From assembly GCA_051530055.1 (NCBI GenBank), contig JBMGUZ010000076.1, forward strand, positions 1 through 12,009: a DNA stretch of 12,009 nucleotides. The letters are read 5' to 3'. The stretch is from Neoechinorhynchus agilis. Taxonomy: Eukaryota; Animalia; Acanthocephala. Positions 1-12,009 of the stretch are shown here, in pieces (position 1 is the stretch's first letter; every line of letters begins with the position of its first letter). The notes beneath the pieces are model-generated. The model did no database searches, had not been told where the DNA came from, and saw nothing but the letters and a program-made list of their open reading frames with translations. The position numbers and the translations under genes were made by a program.

Positions 1-1572
1 GATCACGCACCAGAAGCATGTTGATATTTCTTTAGTGATTAATGGGATTTCAACTCCCTTGTTGTTCAATAATCACGTTTTGCGTTCAGAAAGAGGAGTT
101 CAACAAGGGTTTCTTTGGGTTCAATACCCTTTTCACCCGCAGTAAATCCGGTCGCGCACTCCCTCCAGTCCAGCTTTAACGGCTGGTACCTGGACGATGC
201 CACACTCGGAGGTAACCCCTCCGAAGTACTGAACGATTTGGAGACACTCGTGAAGGAGAAGGCGAAAATTTTCCATTGAATCGAATGCTGCGAAATGCGA
301 GATTTTAGTGATGAACGTGGGACGACGAAGCAAACTATCATGGACGATTTTCATAACCTGGTCTCTGGGATAGAATTGATCAGTCTCGAAAGGTTGAGTC
401 TTCTTGGAAGCTGCAATTTTTGTTCTAATATTGAAGCAGCGATTGTCAATCTTCAACTGCAAATTTCGGTGCTGTGCGAACGAGTTGATGAATTATCTTC
501 ACACGAGGTTTTGTTCCTGATCAAAAACACCTTAGACGTGACTGTGAAAGCCTCTCGTGAGAAAATTTTAAATACTCAGCTGTCGAACGAGGCCTGGCGT
601 CAAGCGTCCTTTCCTGTGTAGTCCGGCGGTTTGGGTACCCGAAAAGCAGTTAATATTTCTCTGCCAGCTTATTTGAGATCGTATGAAGCAAGCCGCAGAA
701 TAGTTCATTCATTTATTGGCTAAAATTACACTTTGGATGAAGATTTCGTGGAGGCGCTTAATCTTTGATCTGGAGATTCAGGCAGCGAGCAGGAACCCGT
801 CAATGGTTGCAAACAATCAGTTTGGGACTCACCGCTGGTGGCGCGAATTAATAACTCTTTAATTTCAGATTATCGTGACCTGGCGAAACGAACTCGATTG
901 GCGGCAGTCTCTACAAGAGAATCGGGTGCTTGGCTCAACGCTATCCCAATCGCTTCTGTGGGTACCCCTCTCTCCGACGCGGCAGTAAGGATTGCAGTGT
1001 CCCTGAGACTCAGCGTACCGATTCGCTGCCGTTGCGGAGCGACCGTGCAACCGTCGGAAAGCCATGGTCTTGTCTCTCAGCAATCAGGCGGAAGGTACTC
1101 GCGAAACGTCGAAATGAACGCAATGCTCTTAGTCGTGCCCTGAATACTATGAATGCACCCAACATCTGAGAGCCGAGCAATCTTTGCCGACTCGATGGCC
1201 GTAGACCGGAAGGCGTCACAGTATTTCCGTGGCCAGGGGATGCAAATGCCTTCTCTGGAACACAATTCGCTGCCAGCGACATAAAATTCGCCACTATTAA
1301 ATCAGAGGAAGCAGCAATCGCCACTGGACCTGAGTCGAAATCATTATTTTGTTCCCTTTGGCTTCGAGATACTCGGGTCGTTTGATACCGCGGCGCAGAA
1401 CCTGGTCAAGCAATTGTCTAAGAGATTGAGACGAATCACTGGTGATCAGAGGGCACTACCATTCCTCCTGCAAAACATAAGTCCGGCTGTGTAACGAGGG
1501 AACGCTGCATCCGTCCTTTCGACCGTTACACCAGGACGGCAGCTGAGTGATCCAGAGCAGTGGCTTGAATGA
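1..1572 (+). mobile_element. Degenerate CRE-clade (RT + restriction-like endonuclease) non-LTR retrotransposon, copy 1; 5' part lies outside the window
   Basis: Manual translation across stops and frameshifts gives, in order: SERGVQQG (GVQQG 95-109, then -1 frameshift), WYLDD (184-198), WRQASFPV*SGGLG (stop 619-621), ESGAWLNAIP, decayed zinc knuckle CRCG..HGLVS..GRYSRN, RRPEGVTVFPW (RPEG 1203-1214; RPDG expected), YFVPFGFEILG (1345-1377), AV*RGNAA (TAA 1492-1494; Q expected), final TGA 1570-1572. This motif order is characteristic of CRE-clade elements. Confidence 0.87.
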
Positions 1573-2104
1573 TATTATGGCTGATACACAAGAATTACTA
1601 ATTATAATGTTAATTGTAGATATCGTATTGGCGTTAATTAATTAACCCTTCACTCTTAGCAAAAATCCACGAACATCTCCCCCATCCCAAAAAATCGAAG
1701 AATAAGCGACTTCGCAGTTTCTTTGATTGCGTGCAACACCACTGGCGCCCGAATAACCACAAAGGTCAACCTCCCAGCCCTCCTACATTAAATACTCTCT
1801 TTTTTCCCGAATCAAGTAAATAATTATCTCTCGACCCCTACTCAAAGTCACAATAAATCGGCCTATCCTACCGTAGCTGATCCATGCAAAGTGACAACCC
1901 TAAACTCATTTCTATAATTACCTTTAACTCATCCCAACTCAAATTTTCGAGTCGCCCTTGGACTTCTCTCTTTGGAATAATCAATCGTTCATTGTCGGCA
2001 TCCCGTTGCGATTCTCCCTTAATCCACCAACAGCAACGAACAATGCAACCGCAATCTCCCTCAACTCCGATCCCGTTTTCCTGAAATGCAAAATTCCCTT
2101 CCCC

Positions 2105-2700
2105 ATCGTTTTCTACTACAATACTCGTAACTTCCTTCCTAAACTAGATGAAATTTCACTCATTTCATCTACTTCAAAAACCGACGTAGTCGTCTTAACA
2201 GAAACGTAGCTCACATCCTTCAACATCGATTCAGCCCTCCTTCCCGGGTACACTTCCTTCCATAAATACCGCGAGGACCGTCCAGGAGGGGTCTCAATTA
2301 ATGTACGGCAATCGCCACCTTAATCTTTATCTCCCACAGTCTCTCTTCAAAACCCCGATTTAGAATTCATCGCAGTCCATTTCATAGCTCATCTGAGTAA
2401 CGGCCTTAGAGAATTCACCATTGCTGGCGTCTATCGCTCTCCGGCATCTCGACCTGAATCCTCTCTACTCCAAATCGACTCTATGATGGAGCTCATAAAC
2501 TCCACAAATTCGCACCACGTCTTAATTGAAGGGAAATTCAATAATCTATTTCCTCTTCTAACCTTCTTTGAGTTGCGTCAACTTATTGACTTCCCGACTC
2601 GCCTTGATACTCACATCGACAAAGTTTTTACAAATATCGACGCCTACTCATCCGCCTCGAAACTCCCTCCCCCGCGAACTCTGGCCATTCCTCTGCCCTT
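2105..2700 (+). pseudogene. Apurinic-like (APE) endonuclease domain remnant of the LINE ORF2
   Basis: YNTRNFLPK; DVVVLTET*L (TAG 2207-2209 where W is expected); GGV; IAGVYRSP (YRSP 2432-2443); IEGKFN (2531-2542; GDFN expected); FPTR..IDKVFTN; NSGH (SGH 2680-2688; SDH expected). Stops and frameshifts throughout. Confidence 0.85.
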
Positions 2701-3141
2701 ATCACTCCGTCCACCCCACCTCAGGGTACGAAATCTCCCCGTTTACCCGTCTGGGATAACCGTGATCATAACATCCACAATTTGAGACAATTATTCGAAT
2801 CTAACATCCGTACATCCCACACTGACAACATCAATGACCCTTCCTTGGCCATGTCCCCGCTAACCTCAATCATAGAAAATTCATTGGCTTCGGCAACTCC
2901 CAAGAAATTCATCAGGATCTCCACTCGCGACCCTTCATGGATAACCCCCCATTCTGAAACTTCTACAAAGGCGAGCCCATCGCAATAACTCCCCAGGCTC
3001 CCCGTTTACAAAAATCACAAACTAACAAAATACTTATCGCCCAGAAAAACTTCCTTTCCTATAAAATTTGATCAGGTGGCAACTCAACATGGTGGCGGGT
3101 CGTCAAGGACTCTCTTGGTCTACGCCACCCGGATCTCTTCA

Positions 3142-3648
3142 TCCAAAGCTTTCGACTCCGTGGACCATTCACTCCTTCTCCTGGCCTGCTCCGATTTTGG
3201 TCTCAACTTGTGGCAGATCCACTGGCTCGAATCTTATCTTCACAATCGCAAACGATACATTCACTGTCGTTCTACCTCTTCTATCAGCCTATTCCCCACC
3301 AATGGCGTACCTCAAGGTGCTGTGCTGTCACCACTTCTCTTTAATATTTTTCTAAACAACCTCAAACATCTTTCCTCTTACTCTAAACTTTTCTTATACG
3401 CCGACGATATCATCCTCATCACCCATTCACCACCTCTCCCTTTCTTTAACCTCTAAGGAAATCAGGCACATAAATGATTTCTGCGCCAATCACAAACTCT
3501 ACCTTAATTTCTCTAAATGCTTCGAAATGATCCCCTCTCCCTCCCCCAACCCCACATCATCCCTGAGCTTCTAAATGACATCCTACGAGCAACCTCCCTA
3601 AGAATTCTGGGTATCCAATTTCAATCAAATTTGAAATAGAACTCGCAC
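3142..3648 (+). pseudogene. Reverse transcriptase domain remnant of the LINE ORF2
   Basis: SKAFDSVDH (KAFD 3145-3156), WLESYLHNR, GVPQGAVLSPLLF (GVPQG 3304-3318), LYADD (YADD 3397-3408), then out-of-frame LNFSKCFEM and LGIQFQSNLK*NSH (TAG 3637-3639 where W is expected). Confidence 0.9.
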
Positions 3649-4137
3649 ATTTCACTCTCTCTCTCAAACTCAACACCTTTAAGATTTATCCCCTCAAACG
3701 CCTCCGACATTTAGGAATCCCTTCACTCGACCATAATGAAAACGCCTCTCGACCCTACCACTACAATTTCTTCCACATATCGCTCCCTTTTCACACGAGC
3801 ACAACACTCGTAATCCTAATTCGTTTCACCCTCCCTCAACCGCGCACCTCACTATATCTACGCGCTTTTTTCCATGCTGCCCAATCTTAGATCGGATATC
3901 AGAACCTGAAATGATTCTGAGGAAAGACCAACCTCACAAGCGCTATTGCGAACAATAAACACCAATTACCACAAGAACGGGCCTTCCAACCCGACCGGAT
4001 ATTCTTAATCGAACGGACACATCCTCACCCGAACGAACCATCCTCGACTGGATGGTTCCTACTCGAATAGACATCCCTCCGACCAGATATTACCTTCCAA
4101 ACGGGCATTCCTCGACTGCATTTTCCCACATTAACGG

Positions 4138-4210
4138 AGGAGGACCCAAAGGTACATGGGTCCTCCTAAACCTTTCTTTGTATCCAATAAAAGTGTTATT
4201 ATATTATTAT
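4138..4210 (+). other. LINE 3' terminal structure: perfect 11-bp stem-loop, poly(A) signal and short-repeat tail
   Basis: AGGAGGACCCA (4138-4148) is the exact reverse complement of TGGGTCCTCCT (4157-4167), with an 8-nt loop AAGGTACA. AATAAA follows at 4186-4191 and TTATTATATTATTAT at 4196-4210. Confidence 0.8.
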
Positions 4211-4865: not shown

Positions 4866-5201
4866 TGTGGAACCTGCCAAAGGACTTTCGAACCTTTATC
4901 TAGCGGACTTGTACGTTCGCATGGCAAACGTAACTCTCGTTGCCCAGGTTCCGGAAAACCAAATCTTCTTTTGGATCAACAGGCAGTCATAAGCAAACCT
5001 TTGGACGTCGAGTATCTCGTTATTCACATCGACCGACTAACCCAGGACGCCAATATCGAGTTCAACGCACCTCTGGATTCCCAGCAGCAGGCTCCATACG
5101 TTCCCACATCATGCTGTTCGGTTTGCAAGGGTATTTATCCGTTGACGAAAATGGGCGTCCTCAGAGTACATGGGCCCAAAGACTGCCGCTGCAAAGGGTC
5201 T
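4866..5201 (+). other. Two tandem C-x2-C-x14-H-x6-C zinc-finger motifs at the N-terminus of CRE copy 2
   Basis: CGTCQRTFEPLSSGLVRSHGKRNSRCPGS (4866-4952) and CSVCKGIYPLTKMGVLRVHGPKDCRCKGS (5115-5201) are in the same open frame with identical ligand spacing. The first lies upstream of the start given in the ORF track. Confidence 0.8.
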
Positions 5202-6033
5202 TCTTTACCCCCACATTTTTACCAATCGTCCCCTCGTAGCCAAAACACCGACTTTGATTTTATTCACAAAATGCTACCTCAGAATATCTTAGAGCGAATC
5301 CCCAAAGGAGCTATAACTCAAGTTGCGTTTAAATACTCTGCTCTTCTGAATGGTTGCGTTGACAGCCTAGAGGATATGAATTGGTTGAAGCTATACGCCT
5401 TCCCTCGCCTGGTTTTGAACACCCAAGGGTTTAATCCGGGAAACTTAACGGATTCTGTAAAAAAGAAAGTCCTGGAATTTGAGAGTGATTTCGAAAGGCT
5501 TTTTGTCTCATCCTATCCTAAACCCACTATGACTTCTAAGAGTTTCCACAAAATCCGCCCTTTAAAGGAGCGAGTTTCGGCAAAATTATCTGATGGAGAC
5601 ATCCGCGGAGCTGTTCGACTTTTAGCCTCAACCGAAGATTTCGCCCCCAGCCATGAAGCCACGTATCAGGCTCTTTAAAATAAGCACCCCAATTTTAATG
5701 GAGCGACGGTGTTTAACTTTCCACAAGTAGCGCCGGACCCAACTTCCCTCAATGAATTTAAAAGGGCTATTTCCTCCTTCGCCAACGGTTCAGGACACGG
5801 ACCTGACGGTTTGCGCTCCCAACACCTAAAGGATATGTTATCCTTCTCGACCTGTGCTGCGGGTAAACTCCTAGAATCTGCCCTGGTCAGAGTGGTTGAC
5901 CTTTTCATCCGGGGTTCTCTTAGCGAATTCGCATTCCTGCTTTTCTTCTCGGCTTCTCTCTCTGTGCGCTTTCGAAAAAAGATGGCGGGATTCGTCCCAT
6001 CGCAATCGGCTGCACTCTTCGGAGACTTGCAGC

Positions 6034-6398
6034 GAGCACGAATCATCAGTTGTTCGCAACACGGATATTAGTTCCGCAGTGGTGGCCCATGCAAAAAACT
6101 CAGGGCACACTATTGATTTTAGTACCGCTACAACACTAGTTCGCAAGGGTCGGCGTTTCGAACGTATTATCATCGAATCCTTATAAATAGGTTCGAAACG
6201 TTCGAGGGCAATAAACCTGATTTCAAATTAAGGATGCGACTCCCACCGGATGTTATGTGACGTGTGAATTGAGAATCCTTGTGTGTGTTTTAGATCGCTG
6301 AAGAAGATACGAAATAGTGGATCGAAATATCAAATCAATAAATTCTTAGTTTCATTTATCTCTCCTATCGACAAATAAAAATGAATTATCTTTTCAAC
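6034..6398 (+). mobile_element. 3' fragment of a Penelope-like element (GIY-YIG C-terminal half plus 3' UTR) nested in CRE copy 2; boundaries approximate
   Basis: CRE homology stops after RRLAA (~6034) and resumes at ~6399 (...RVAPKLGGVLKPFQLG). The insert reads EHESSVVRNTDISSAVVAHAKNSGHTIDFSTATTL...RIIIESL*I...AIN, matching the EH..SAVAxH..GH.IDF..R..ES..I..IN pattern of Penelope GIY-YIG endonucleases. A CTGAAGA...GAAA motif and AATAAA (6337-6342) follow. Confidence 0.78.
6298..6331 (+). ncRNA. Minimal hammerhead-ribozyme-like motif of the Penelope type, probably degenerate
   Basis: CTGAAGA (6298-6304) plus an extra A; stem II GAT/ATC (6306-6308 with 6321-6323) extended by C-G and G-T pairs; GAAA (6324-6327); then TATC, giving a palindromic ATAT helix III and an AUC cleavage triplet (6329-6331). 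Helix I pairs poorly at the two positions next to the core. Confidence 0.45.
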
Positions 6399-7990
6399 AT
6401 AATATGTAAGAGTTGCGCCGAAATTGGGTGGGGTGTTGAAGCCCTTCCAGCTAGGATGCTGCACACCTTGTGCTGCCGAAGCCATTACTCACGCTCTTCG
6501 CGACCATCTTGAAGTGGCAAAGGCTCCTCTGGTCGTCTTAAAGTTAGATTTTAAAAACGCCTTCAACTACTTCCGCAGAGAGAAAATGTTGGATGCCATC
6601 AAAGATTTTATCCCTTAAAGCTACCCCTACTTTTTATTGGCATACTCCAAATTCGAAATCCATTTTCAGGGATTCGATGACAGTTCACGTTCGACGATCG
6701 TCGCAGATTTTCGGCAAGTTGCTCCCGAGGTGCTCGAAGTTACAAAATACGAATTTAATCTCCTCGGAAGCCCCATTTTCGCCGAAAATGTCTCAAAGGA
6801 CCTCGAGGCCCACATACCGAAGCTCGAATTATTATGTACAAGAGCATGTGAGCTGTCGGCGCACAAAGCCTTCTATCCCCAAATTGATGTATAAGTTGAG
6901 GGCTGCTCCGTGTTTCGGGGAGAAAAGAGTTTTATCGGATCTCGACGGGGTTTTACGCTCTTTTTCAAAGAAAATTTTAAATATAAACATTGCGGGTACG
7001 GGCTGGCGGTAGGCTACGTTCCCAACCTCTTTTAGCGGCCTCGGCATCCGCGCAGTGTCTGATTTAGCCCTTCCGGCGTTCCTCTCCTCTTACCGAGTCA
7101 GCAAAACGTACGCGGAAGCCCTTTCCAACATGAGACAAAACTCGCAATATTATTTGGACGGTTTATCGATCTGGCAATCCCGGACAGAGATCCTGCACCT
7201 TCCGGAAAATGACCACAAGCAGTCGGCTTGGGACCTTCCCCTCATAAAGAAGATTCACAAATCCTTTAATAATCTTCTCGACGAGGTATCCCAAGTTCGT
7301 CTTGCGGCGTGCTCTACAAAGGAATCGGGAGCCTGGCTAAATGCTCTCCCCGCCCCGACAATCGGAACTCTTCTAGAGGATTCTACGTTAAGGGTCGCAG
7401 TTTCTTTAAGATTGGGCCAGGATATTTGTATCCCGCATCGCTGTCGCTGCGGCTCTATAGTTGACGCTAATGGCAATGTCCAGAGGGAGGTTTCCAAGAC
7501 ACGCAGAGTTGAACTCAATTTTGAGTAGAGCCCTAGATTTCGTTCACGTGCCCAATATTCTAGAGTCGAGTAATTTATGCCGCCTAGAAAGCAAGCGACT
7601 TGGCGGTGTCACGGTTTTTCCATGGTGGGAGGGAAAACCGCTTTTATGGGACGCGACTTGTGTGGACACGCTTGCGCCCAGTAATTTTCTCTTTTCAAAA
7701 AAGAGCCCTGGATGTTCAGCGGTCGTAGCTAAGGAACGAAAGCGTTCAAAATATAAAGAGCTATTAAGGAATTGTTATTATTAAAACTCACACCTCATAC
7801 AAATTAAGGAATTACCATTTCGTCGAAATAAAAATGAAATTGTAAAATAAACGATATGTTTTTAAAAAAGCTTAAACTAAAATAAACGATCATCATGATT
7901 TCGTCTAAAGAAAAGCCGTTTTTATCTCTTAAAGGCAGTATTTTCGCATAATTAACACTTCTGGACCTTAAAAGAAGATTGCGTTCAAAG

Positions 7991-8852
7991 TTAAGACTCT
8001 CCTTTATTGTCAATTTCAGTCCTTAAATCACATTGAAAATGCTTTTCAAAACTTTGTTCAATCAATTGAGCCACTTCGTCGATCGATCGGGTGATTCCTT
8101 CGGTTTTAAGACTACTCATTTCAACGTCACTTATGAACCGTGATTTTTAATGTCTACTAAAATCAGAGCTCCACTAATCCACATGGGACAATCTTTGAGA
8201 AATAATCAAGATTTGTGGCTACGTTCAATGCGAATCCATGCATAGATATTCCTGAACGTAAATGAACTCCAATACTGCAAATTTTCTTTCCATCTCGACT
8301 ATAGACGCCGAGTCGTGCCTTTTCAAGATCAGCGTAGCATCCAGAAAGGCCAACATTTTCAACTGCGTCAATCACGATCTTTCCAAGAGTCTCCACGTAA
8401 TCAATATTGCTCAATCGACGTCGATGAAGCCGTAAAAGTGGATATCCTATCAATTGACCGGGTCCATGAAACGTCCAGAGACCACCACGATTGACGCAAA
8501 CAATCTCAGCATCGGTTTCAGTTTTTAATTTCTTCATTTTCCCCTCAAATTCTTCATTACGGAAAGCTCTCAAACCTATCGTATCGAATTCTCATTGTTA
8601 CTGTAAGATAAAGCTAAGAAATAATTCTTCTCCGAAAAAAAGAGCGTAGTTGCCGTGCGTAAATTAACAAGAAATCCAAGATGAGAATTGATGGTTTACT
8701 GTGAAAACGGGATAATGTTCGGTTAATAAGAAAGCCTCGGGTTCATTGGGATTATCTTGAATTCTTTGATGAAGATCTGTCTGAATCTTTAAAGCCATCG
8801 AATAATTTGTGGATCCCAATCGATAAAGATTTATTATAGGGCGAAACGCCAT
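7991..8852 (-). CDS. LIPT2: Lipoyl(octanoyl) transferase (LipB/LIPT2), 3 exons: 8852-8701, 8580-8176, 8132-7991; 699 nt, 232 aa
   Basis: Spliced protein MAFRPIINLYRLGSTNYSMALKIQ...LLTEHYPVFT|IGLR...NRGGLWTFHGPGQLIGYP...KKICSIGVH...HGFALN...IVPCGL|SDVEMSSL...EVAQLIEQSFEKHFQCDL...GES*. All LipB hallmarks are present (EHxPVxTxG, RGGxxTxHGPGQ, catalytic Lys in KIxxIG, HGxALN, catalytic Cys in PCG) and no exon has an internal stop. Exact splice positions are ambiguous by 1-3 nt. Confidence 0.93.
8133..8175 (-). other. LIPT2 intron 2, 43 nt, non-canonical AG...AT (equivalent shift GT...TA; GG...AG also keeps frame)
   Basis: Joining VPCGL to SDVEMSSL requires removing 43 nt. The GT...AG pair (8174 to 8130) gives TTA-TGA, a stop. 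Internal hairpin on the + strand: TGATTTT (8141-8147) with AAAATCA (8159-8165). Confidence 0.68.
8581..8700 (-). other. LIPT2 intron 1, 120 nt, non-canonical AG...AC (one-base alternative GT...CG)
   Basis: Restoring PVFT-IGLR requires removing exactly 120 nt that contain in-frame stops. No single GT-AG pair here keeps the frame. The intron carries a subterminal inverted repeat: + strand ATCGAATTCTCAT (8583-8595) against ATGAGAATTGAT (8681-8692), with a perfect 9-bp core. Confidence 0.72.
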
Positions 8853-9045: not shown

Positions 9046-9255
9046 TAGTTTCGCCACCTCGCCGGATTTACTAATCTATATTTCCCCGATAATTCACCTC
9101 TCGGATAATTCTCCGGCATTTCCTCTCAAGGTTTGTGATGGCTATTTAGAAAAACTTAAAAGCAATCACAAGCCTTGAGAAGAAATGTCGGAGAATTATC
9201 CGAGAGGTGAAATATCGGGGAAATAAATCAAGGAATCCGGGGGTTGGCGAAACTA
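9046..9255. repeat. Long fold-back (MITE-like) palindrome; ancestral-looking first unit of the satellite (unit spans ~8993-9270)
   Basis: 61-bp arms at 9079-9139 and 9165-9225 match at 57/61 as reverse complements, around a partly self-complementary 25-nt spacer. The outer pair TAGTTTCGCCA (9046-9056) / TGGCGAAACTA (9245-9255) is perfect, and CCGGATT/AATCCGG lies in between. Confidence 0.88.
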
Positions 9256-9270
9256 AGAAAATGAAAAAGT

Positions 9271-12009
9271 ATGTCTTGGATTATTGTTTTCGGACGAAAA
9301 GAAACTTTCTTTTTTGGTAGTTTTGCCACCCCGCCGGATTTACTAATCTATATTTCCCCGATATTTCACCTCTCGGAAAATTCTCCGGCATTTCCTCTCA
9401 AGGTTTGTCTTTGTCGTAGAATTATCCGAGAGGTGAAATATCGGGGAAATAAATCAAGGAATCCGGGGGTTGGCGAAACTAAGAAAATGAAAAAGTATGT
9501 CTTGGATTATTGTTTTCGGACGAAAAGAAACTTTCTTTTTTGGTAGTTTTGCCACCCCGCCGGATTTACTAATCTATATTTCCCCGATATTTCACCTCTC
9601 GGATAATTCTCCGGCATTTCCTCTCAAGGTTTGTCTTTGTCGTAGAATTATCCGAGAGGTGAAATATCGGGGAAATAAATCAAGGAATCCGGGGTTGGCG
9701 AAACTAAGAAAATGAAAAAGTATGTCTTGGATTATTGTTTTCGGACAAAAAGAAACTTTTTTGGTAGTTTTGCCACCCCGCCTGATTTACTAATCTATAT
9801 TTCCCCGATATTTCACCTCTCGGAAAATTCCGGCATTTCCTCTCAAGGTTTGTCTTTGTCGTAGAATTATCCGAGAGGTGAAATATCGGGGAAATAAATC
9901 AAGGAATCCGGGGTTGGCGAAACTAAGAAAATGAAAAAGTATGTTTGGATTATTGTTTTCGGACAAAAGAGACTTTTTTTGTAGTTTTGCCACCCCGCCT
10001 GATTTACTAATCTATATTTCCCCGATATTCACCTCTCGGAAAATTCTCCGGCATTTCCTCTCAAGGTTTGTCTTTGTCGTAGAATTATCCGAGAGGTGAA
10101 ATATCGGGGAAATAAATCAAGGAATCCGGGGTTAAACAAGAAAATGAAAAAGTATGTCTTGATTATTGTTTTCGGACAAAAAGAAACTTTCTTTTGTAGT
10201 TTTGCCACCCCGCCTGATTTACTAATCTATATTTCCCCGATATTTCACCTCTCGGAAAATTCTCCGGCATTTCCTCTCAAGGTTTGTCTTTGTCGTAGAA
10301 TTATCCGAGAGGTGAAATATCGGGGAAATAAATCAAGGAATCCGGGGTTGGCGAAACTAAGAAAATGAAAAAGTATGTCTTGGATTATTGTTTTCGGACG
10401 AAAAGAAACTTTCTTTTTTGGTAGTTTTGCCACCCCGCCTGATTTACTAATCTATTTCCCCGATATTTCACCTCTCGGAAAATTCTCCGGCATTTCCTCT
10501 CAAGGTTTGTCTTTGTCGTAGAATTATCCGAGAGGTGAAATATCGGGGAAATAAATCAAGGAATCCGGGGTTGGCGAAACTAAGAAAATGAAAAAGTATG
10601 TCTTGGATTATTGTTTTCGGACGAAAAGAAACTTTCTTTTTTGGTAGTTTTGCCACCCCGCCTGATTTACTAATCTATATTTCCCCGATATTTCACCTCT
10701 CGGAAAATTCTCCGGCATTTCCTCTCAAGGTTTGTCTTTGTCGTAGAATTATCCGAGAGGTGAAATATCGGGGAAATAAATCAAGGAATCCGGGGTTGGC
10801 GAAACTAAGAAAATGAAAAAGTATGTCTTGGATTATTGTTTTCGGACGAAAAGAGACTTTCTTTTTTGGTAGTTTTGCCACCCCGCCTGATTTACTAATC
10901 TATATTTCCCCGATATTTCACCTCTCGGAAAATTCTCCGGCATTTCCTCTCAAGGTTTGTCTTTGTCGTAGAATTATCCGAGAGGTGAAATATCGGGGAA
11001 ATAAATCAAGGAATCCGGGGTTGGCGAAACTAAGAAAATGAAAAAGTATGTCTTGGATTATTGTTTTCGGACGAAAAGAAACTTTCTTTTTTGGTAGTTT
11101 TGCCACCCCGCCTGATTTACTAATCTATATTTCCCCGATATTTCACCTCTCGGAAAATTCTCCGGCATTTCCTCTCAAGGTTTGTCTTTGTCGTAGAATT
11201 ATCCGAGAGGTGAAATATCGGGGAAATAAATCAAGGAATCCGGGGTTGGCGAAACTAAGAAAATGAAAAAGTATGTCTTGGATTATTGTTTTCGGACGAA
11301 AAGAAACTTTCTTTTTTGGTAGTTTTGCCACCCCGCCTGATTTACTAATCTATATTTCCCCGATATTTCACCTCTCGGAAAATTCTCCGGCATTTCCTCT
11401 CAAGGTTTGTCTTTGTCGTAGAATTATCCGAGAGGTGAAATATCGGGGAAATAAATCAAGGAACGGGGTTGGCGAAACTAAGAAAATGAAAAGTATGTCT
11501 TGGATTATTGTTTTGACGAAAAGAGACTTTCTTTTTTGGTAGTTTTGCCACCCCGCCTGATTTACTAATCTATATTTCCCCGATATTTCACCTCTCGGAA
11601 AATTCTCCGGCATTTCCTCTCAAGGTTTGTCTTTGTCGTAGAATTATCCGAGAGGTGAAATATCGGGGAAATAAATCAAGGAATCCGGGGTTGGCGAAAC
11701 TAAGAAAATGAAAAAGTATGTCTTGGATTATTGTTTTCGGACGAAAAGAGACTTTCTTTTTTGGTAGTTTTGCCACCCCGCCTGATTTACTAATCTATAT
11801 TTCCCCGATATTTCACCTCTCGGAAAATTCTCCGGCATTTCCTCTCAAGGTTTGTCTTTGTCGTAGAATTATCCGAGAGGTGAAATATCGGGGAAATAAA
11901 TCAAGGAATCCGGGGTTGGCGAAACTAAGAAAATGAAAAAGTATGTCTTGGATTATTGTTTTCGGACGAAAAGAGACTTTCTTTTTTGGTAGTTTTGCCA
12001 CCCCGCCTG
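9271..12009. repeat. Tandem satellite with ~225-bp palindromic monomer; 12 full units plus a partial one, running off the window
   Basis: Unit starts (ATGTCTTG-like) at 9271, 9497, 9722, 9941, 10154, 10375, 10598, 10823, 11048, 11273, 11495, 11718 and 11943; lengths 213-226. Each unit has a 34-bp inverted repeat (TATTTCCCCGATATTTCACCTCTCGGA(A/T)AATTCT with AGAATTATCCGAGAGGTGAAATATCGGGGAAATA) plus weaker outer arms. Confidence 0.98.

Follow-up and report, generated by a model that had tools for sequence, protein, structure and literature searches.

How can a housekeeping gene be spliced when neither of its two introns has GT-AG ends, and what may such a gene say about the organism that carries it? 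This question is raised by a LIPT2 gene, coding for a LipB protein, on the minus strand of a stretch of DNA of 12,009 nucleotides (nt), which will be referred to here as the window. This gene is quite probably functional and nuclear, and belongs to the Fritillaria borealis lineage, i.e., of this larvacean or of a close fritillariid, with one AG/AC and one AG/AT intron that would be removed by the U2-type spliceosome. The two introns are a further example of a published intron kind, not a new splicing code, and the independently rewired, novel code that an earlier note on this DNA had considered is not needed as an explanation.

When 120 nt and 43 nt are taken out of the minus-strand gene (8852..7991), the remaining 699 nt encode a protein of 232 amino acids (aa) without a stop. 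The earlier note had placed these two removals at 8700-8581 and 8175-8133, and both its coordinates and its arithmetic were confirmed, with the product matching LipB over its full length. The spliced product covers all 200 of the 200 profile positions of the Pfam family LplA-B_cat (PF21948; 1.1e-31), scores 133.4 bits against the curated NCBIfam lipB model TIGR00214, for which the cut-off is 83.55, and matches the LipB of Mycobacterium tuberculosis (PDB 1W66; 9.7e-26) in an alignment that is continuous across both junctions. The alignment with 10 homologues has no gap at either junction and retains 37 of 37 invariant columns, with EHYPVFT^IGLR (^ marks the junction) opposite EHxPVYTIGxR at the first junction and IVPCGL^SDVEMSSL opposite IVPCGxxDKGVTSL at the second. 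The invariant columns include K150 and C184, the latter in the PCG motif, and these two residues, which correspond to the Lys and Cys that act together in catalysis in solved LipB structures, are taken here to be the catalytic pair. The gene has a GC content of 39%, with 31% at third codon positions (GC3), and follows the standard genetic code, with Gln encoded by CAA or CAG, no in-frame TAA, TAG or TGA, and TAA as the stop. Because the junctions are free of gaps and all the invariant residues are kept in a full-length LipB, the gene looks functional, and both interruptions are real.

The next point is whether canonical splice sites can explain these junctions. Every GT-AG, GC-AG and AT-AC pair around intron 1 was enumerated (n = 195), and a LipB profile, built from the 120 best database matches, was used to score all the excisions close to either site that preserve the frame and leave no stop in it (n = 6,548). 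At intron 1, 133 of the canonical-type pairs cause a frameshift, 47 bring in a stop, and 15 leave the frame open; the earlier statement that canonical pairs at these sites give frameshifts or stops was therefore too strong, although the open pairs are inferior to the 120-nt excision by 9.2 to 41 bits, with conserved residues either lost or inserted. The nine top-scoring excisions all measure 120 nt and lie in neighbouring registers (235.9-238.4 bits). The best AT-AC pair, 8688..8581, reaches 227.5 bits (9.2 worse) and inserts VNHQ into the invariant T-x-G, the best GT-AG pair, 8668..8567, reaches 224.2 bits (12.5 worse), and another GT-AG pair, 8699..8544, reaches 219.8 bits with IGLRAFRNEEFE deleted. 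A micro-exon within intron 1, or the use of a CAG acceptor inside it, was ruled out by in-frame TAA or TGA. At intron 2, the fourteen top-scoring excisions all measure 43 nt and the best GT-AG pair lies 43 bits below them, but an in-frame GC-AG pair (8169..8130), overlooked by the earlier note, is only 5.6 bits below the best excision. As a control, the same exon mapping applied to the LIPT2 gene of Takifugu rubripes recovers clean GT-AG introns. No GT-AG, GC-AG or AT-AC pair matches the 120-nt and 43-nt excisions in quality.

Homology, then, calls for two non-canonical excisions and leaves their register unfixed, as about nine adjacent registers, GT/CG and GT/TA included, lie within 1.7 bits of one another. 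Several of them are also equivalent at the level of the mRNA: the AC..AT, CA..TA and AG..AC registers of intron 1 all give TTC ACG ATA, with the GT..CG register (8699-8580) giving TTC ACA ATA instead, and the TA..CA, AG..AT and GT..TA registers of intron 2 all yield GGA TTA AGT GAC. A register that gives AG...AC and AG...AT ends does exist, as the earlier note had it, and its score is in the top class, but it is not unique; it is the one that we infer from the comparison with F. borealis.

In this larvacean, 31,093 intron borders have been mapped by Iso-Seq, and GT/AG accounts for 5% of them, with AG/AC (18%) and AG/AT (16%) as the largest classes (Soo et al. 2026, NAR, PMC13326754). The same work reports that the introns end in a YAY triplet (Y being a pyrimidine) "almost invariably", with a further YAY "often" directly upstream of the 5' site, that A occupies the penultimate position in 88% of the introns with unambiguous borders, that introns ending in AC have pyrimidine tracts with purine interruptions, and that larvaceans are without a U12 spliceosome, the U2-type spliceosome removing all the intron classes of F. 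borealis; the earlier note was thus correct both about the commonest classes and about the machinery. According to a review, such introns carry terminal inverted repeats, target-site duplications and species-specific positions, and the upstream triplet is given as TAC (PMC11282704).

The introns of the window resemble this description in several respects. They read CAC^AG...TAC^ (intron 1) and ATT^AG...CAT^ (intron 2), with both 3' triplets YAY and both penultimate bases A; an upstream YAY is seen at intron 1 only, where CAC ends exon 1 directly before the intron, this being a feature that is frequent and not obligatory in F. borealis. Random site pairs were sampled in the window, and a 5' AG combined with YAY at the 3' end, allowed in any of 9-10 neighbouring registers, was found in 2.2-3.1% of the cases per intron, which corresponds to ~7e-4 for both introns; requiring a YAY upstream as well gives 0.26% for intron 1. 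The YAY hallmark, here as TAC and CAT, had not been used by the earlier note, and it lends support to the interpretation of a F. borealis-like lineage that the note had put forward. Further likenesses are the purine-interrupted tract before the 3' AC of intron 1, and the fact that both introns are short, contain inverted repeats and occupy positions not common to the other animals compared. Indeed, neither the Thr51 nor the Leu186 position is shared with the pufferfish Takifugu or the insects Nasonia and Daktulosphaira: the fish gene has introns at residues 2/3, 109/110 and ~152 (the two examined being GT-AG), none of which is present in the window gene, and the coding sequences of the two other LIPT2 genes are intronless.

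Intron 1 has an architecture of its own. Its inverted-repeat arms, ATCAATTCTCAT and ATGAGAATTCGAT, form a 12-bp stem, separated from the start of the intron by 8 nt and from its last base by 2 nt, and 0.16-0.23% of the shuffled or random 120-mers used as controls have a perfect inverted repeat of at least 9 bp within their terminal 25 nt; the fold of the whole intron is no stabler than that of shuffles (z = -0.2), so that the terminal stem alone is notable. The final 22 nt, AGTAACAATGAGAATTCGATAC, are purine-rich and precede the 3' AC, with the pyrimidine tract set back to 8622-8604. This tract leads to the internal CAG acceptor, placed 20 nt upstream of the junction demanded by homology, whose use puts TAA and TGA in frame, and the splicing machinery of the source organism must ignore or bypass it. 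Possible branch sites are CTTAC (A at 8603, 22 nt from the 3' end) and GTAAC (A at 8598, 17 nt from the 3' end). Intron 2 as a whole forms a single hairpin (-9.6 kcal/mol, z = -2.3). The coordinates of these features are collected in Table 1.

Table 1. Position of the LIPT2 exons, introns and intron elements within the window
Feature	Position	Strand	Description
LipB/LIPT2 exon 1	8701..8852	-	ATG at 8852-8850; in-frame TAA four codons upstream; 3' end CCC GTT TTC AC (PVFT)
Intron 1	8581..8700	-	120 nt, AG...AC (preferred register), phase 2 in codon Thr51; terminal triplet TAC; GC 33%
5' arm of intron 1 inverted repeat	8681..8692	-	AUCAAUUCUCAU, intron nt 9-20; perfect 9-bp core 8681-8689
Bypassed canonical-looking acceptor in intron 1	8601..8622	-	TTATTTCTTAGCTTTATCTTACAG, pyrimidine tract and CAG ending at 8601
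3' arm of intron 1 inverted repeat	8583..8597	-	Intron nt 104-118, one bulged C; perfect core 8587-8595
LipB/LIPT2 exon 2	8176..8580	-	From G ATA GGT TTG (8580) to GGA TT (8176); IGLRAF... to ...IVPCGL; NRGG and HGPGQ motifs, invariant Lys150 and Cys184
Intron 2	8133..8175	-	43 nt, AG...AT (preferred register), phase 2 in codon Leu186; terminal triplet CAT
Alternative excision for intron 2	8130..8169	-	40 nt, GC...AG, in frame; one residue gained (PCGLVDDVEM); 5.6 bits lower
LipB/LIPT2 exon 3	7991..8132	-	Starts A AGT GAC; SDVEMSSLKTE to ...FEKHFQCDL...NKGES; TAA stop at 7993-7991

By analogy with the published work on F. borealis, both introns would be removed by an ordinary U2-type spliceosome, in which duplicated and diverged U2AF1-beta and U2AF2-beta proteins may bind 3' ends other than AG where purines interrupt the tract before them. 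The U2AF beta/beta heterodimer favours a probe in which the 3' AU is preceded by purines, and U2AF1-beta enriches triplets ending in AC, with AG depleted. For the other end of the intron, the loss of N6-methyladenosine (m6A) on A43 of U6, together with the stable m6A that U1 carries at its 5' end, has been proposed to aid the recognition of non-GU 5' sites (PMC13326754), and an altered m6A pattern of the U1 and U6 small nuclear RNAs could likewise tolerate the non-GU 5' ends of the window introns. The first A and the last C of intron 1 could form the same non-Watson-Crick pair as that of AT-AC introns, and the internal inverted repeats may bring the intron ends together. As for their origin, the introns probably arose from small insertions with inverted repeats, similar to miniature inverted-repeat transposable elements (MITEs), at lineage-specific sites, and the YAY triplet that precedes the 5' site and recurs as the last three intron bases may be the remnant of a target-site duplication.

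Other readings of the same junctions have to be weighed against this one, and the closest of them, although unlikely, keeps the two introns and moves them one base further 3', as GT...CG (8699-8580) and GT...TA (8174-8132), which would retain GU at the 5' ends and confine the departure from the canonical form to the 3' ends. The protein is unchanged and the profile score is equal (236.7 bits), ACA^GUAAAC of intron 1 resembles a U1-type 5' site, GT...CG keeps the G-G pair of first and last bases, and the GT/TA and AG/AT forms of intron 2, having identical mRNA, are inseparable even by cDNA. What counts against this shift is that the penultimate bases become C and T, contrary to the prevalent A and to the YAY rule of F. 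borealis, that UUA^GUGGAG of intron 2 is a poor U1 match, and that a fit of both introns to AG plus YAY would have to be due to chance, at the rate estimated above. Alternatively, intron 2 could be the 40-nt GC-AG intron 8169-8130, of a semi-canonical class common in larvaceans, leaving intron 1 as the only one that is truly non-canonical. In its favour, the excision leaves the reading frame intact and without a stop, tunicates often have GV/AG introns (PMC13326754), and one homologue (P0035) varies in length in the loop at intron 2. It adds a residue, however, where 10 of 10 aligned homologues and 1W66 keep a constant length, and in F. borealis the introns with a 3' AG total 15%, compared with 34% for those with a 3' AT (PMC13326754). 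Its donor, GA^GCUCUG, is also far from a strong consensus. GC donors usually need such a consensus, and we regard the 40-nt intron as very unlikely.

The window may also come from another lineage with many non-canonical introns, be it one with introners of the Amoebophrya type, the hemistasiid diplonemids, the euglenids or an undescribed group, with the AG/AY ends as a coincidence or a convergence; this we hold to be distinctly unlikely. The non-canonical introns of Amoebophrya strain A25 average 120 nt and have inverted repeats of 8-20 nt near their ends and direct repeats of 3-5 nt across their borders (PMC7789003), a description that intron 1 recalls in its length, its near-terminal inverted repeat, its border repeats and its ends other than GT-AG, and the non-canonical introns of diplonemids and euglenids likewise pair their ends. 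Amoebophrya introns differ in having no preferred terminal dinucleotides and in residing in nuclear genes of ~54-58% GC, compared with the low GC and GC3 of the window gene and its AG/YAY signature, which is specific to the Fritillaria classes; the intron ends of hemistasiids are C/G-rich (CT-CG, TG-GC etc.). Nonconventional euglenid introns pair a CAG at +4..+6 with a CTG at -8..-6 (PMC11282704), and this signature fails in every register of both introns: the sole register of intron 1 with CAG at +4..+6 (8704..8585) reads AGA at -8..-6, and intron 2 has no such pair. A U12-type intron was sought by its 5' ATATCCTT and by the TCCTTAAC branch site that should lie 10-15 nt ahead of the 3' splice site. 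Intron 1 resembles this type in ending with AC and in the A...C pair of its first and last bases, but the in-frame AT...AC pairs, whose 5' ends read ATTCTCAT or similar, add or lose conserved residues and score at least 9.2 bits lower; the best of them, 8688..8581 with its VNHQ insert, itself starts with ATTCTCAT and not with the U12 consensus, and U12 splicing is the system that larvaceans have lost. The introners of Micromonas and Aureococcus were reportedly described by Huff et al. in 2016. Like the window introns, they are short inverted-repeat insertions with short direct repeats at their borders and lineage-specific positions, but they differ in forming multi-copy families and in deriving GT-AG ends from the element and the target-site duplication (PMC11282704), compared with the non-canonical ends and the single copies of the window. 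Least probable of all is that there is no splicing, the gene being a recent pseudogene with two insertions, or its interruptions being removed from the DNA in the manner of the internal eliminated sequences (IESs) of ciliates, or assembly errors hiding two GT-AG introns. Inverted repeats are present in both elements, and TA direct repeats can be drawn at the borders, 120 nt apart at 8698/8578 and 43 nt apart at 8176/8133, a feature reminiscent of the IESs of ciliates or of Tc1/mariner footprints. Against a pseudogene stand the 699 nt devoid of stops and frameshifts, the invariant residues, all of them kept, and the improbability of two independent recent insertions in a 0.7-kb gene; against a ciliate stands the codon usage, which bears no sign of a ciliate code, and the element ends do not fit the end consensus of Paramecium or Euplotes IESs. 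Assembly errors had already been judged the weaker explanation by the earlier note, and rightly so, as turning GT..CG into GT..AG takes a base substitution and not an indel, and intron 2 needs a separate, different error. Finally, it is highly improbable that the source lies outside Fritillariidae and reached an AG...YAY code independently, or that it is an unsampled larvacean branch that would shift the origin of the code.

A number of observations nevertheless weigh against the assignment to the F. borealis lineage, and they should be considered together. It is the intron signature, and no other feature of the window, that points to this lineage, and the signature comes from a sample of two introns; the species, the exact register, the actual splicing and the machinery are all matters that we infer. 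The agreement with F. borealis is also incomplete, in that the triplet upstream of intron 2 is ATT and not YAY, and guanines at +4 and +6, over-represented in F. borealis introns (PMC13326754), are missing from intron 1. The arms of the intron 1 stem fall short of the exact termini, inverted repeats of 9-10 bp occur by chance inside exon 2 too, and the window holds no second copy of either intron. The window does not contain the spliced-leader sequence of F. borealis, nor is there any ground for expecting it to. The protein comparisons do not name a larvacean either. The closest LipB relative in the protein search has 46% identity, the metagenome scan with the LipB protein returned loci of at most 40% identity, consistent with bacterial lipB genes, and exact look-ups of the open reading frames (ORFs) of exon 2, of the satellite and of a retroelement described below found no record in the contig index. 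Among the proteins matched by the retroelements, three for the ORF of the C-terminal domain and seven for the reverse transcriptase (RT) ORF, all have at most 49% identity, and the contigs that encode them are ENA metagenome records. The LIPT2 phylogeny by which the earlier note proposed to identify the species was run, and it does group the query with animal LIPT2, yet it is uninformative as to the taxon: in the neighbour-joining tree of LipB, the query lies in a clade with five named animal LIPT2 sequences, and its nearest neighbour, P0115, is encoded on a 1.8-kb metagenome contig that, with its tightly packed and overlapping genes, looks bacterial.

The surroundings of the gene are rich in repeats. 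Upstream, a satellite of 225-bp units begins ~140-330 nt from the LipB start codon; it occupies 9186-12009 of the window with 12.7 copies and 97% matches, runs past the window end, and is preceded by a diverged partial copy from ~8990. Each unit holds an inverted repeat of 40-71 nt (e.g., 9351-9390 / 9412-9451, 93% complementary), which makes the satellite a tandem foldback array. Scans with Rfam and for tRNAs gave no match in the window, satellite included, and the 72-aa ORF of the satellite had no record in the collections searched.

On the other side of the gene, no AATAAA or ATTAAA polyadenylation signal was found within 290 nt 3' of the LipB stop (minus strand, window 7700-7990), and decayed retroelements fill much of the sequence. 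A degenerate retrotransposon of the type without long terminal repeats (non-LTR) lies at ~1950-4150 on the plus strand, with an endonuclease-like stretch (...VVVLTETWL...), an RVT_1 domain at 3076-3456 (1.2e-16), and a coding sequence disrupted by frameshifts and stops; on the sense strand, C strongly outnumbers G, with a GC skew of -0.3 to -0.5 across 1500-4000. Decayed pieces at 1-1500 and 4971-7784, also on the plus strand, have in common a C-terminal "(R/K)ESGAWLNA(I/L)P...CRCG" domain with no Pfam match, and the second of these decayed retroelements ends at ~7784, ~200 nt downstream of the LipB stop. One relative of this C-terminal domain is encoded on an ENA metagenome contig of 1.18 Mb (L001), where it follows Exo_endo_phos and RVT_1 genes.

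Splicing of this kind has already been described in papers of 2019 and 2026, along with its hallmarks and part of the mechanism. The AG/AC and AG/AT non-canonical U2-type introns of F. borealis are reportedly the subject of the earlier of these papers, by Henriet et al. (Curr Biol, doi 10.1016/j.cub.2019.07.092). If the window comes from F. borealis itself, the mapped set of 31,093 borders probably includes both introns, and the practical value of the locus would be limited. Even so, it could serve as a minigene, since it is small, its first junction can be read as ACG versus ACA, and the internal CAG acceptor provides a control. A more general consequence is that gene finders enforcing the GT-AG rule will break genes in such genomes. 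Were the source to lie outside Fritillariidae, the importance of the finding would be much greater. With a code reached independently, non-GT-AG splicing of the U2 type would have arisen more than once under the same rules. If the source is a fritillariid, the locus would be a compact case of a chordate genome that has largely abandoned the GT-AG rule, in which even a housekeeping gene needs the removal of an AG/AC and an AG/AT intron.

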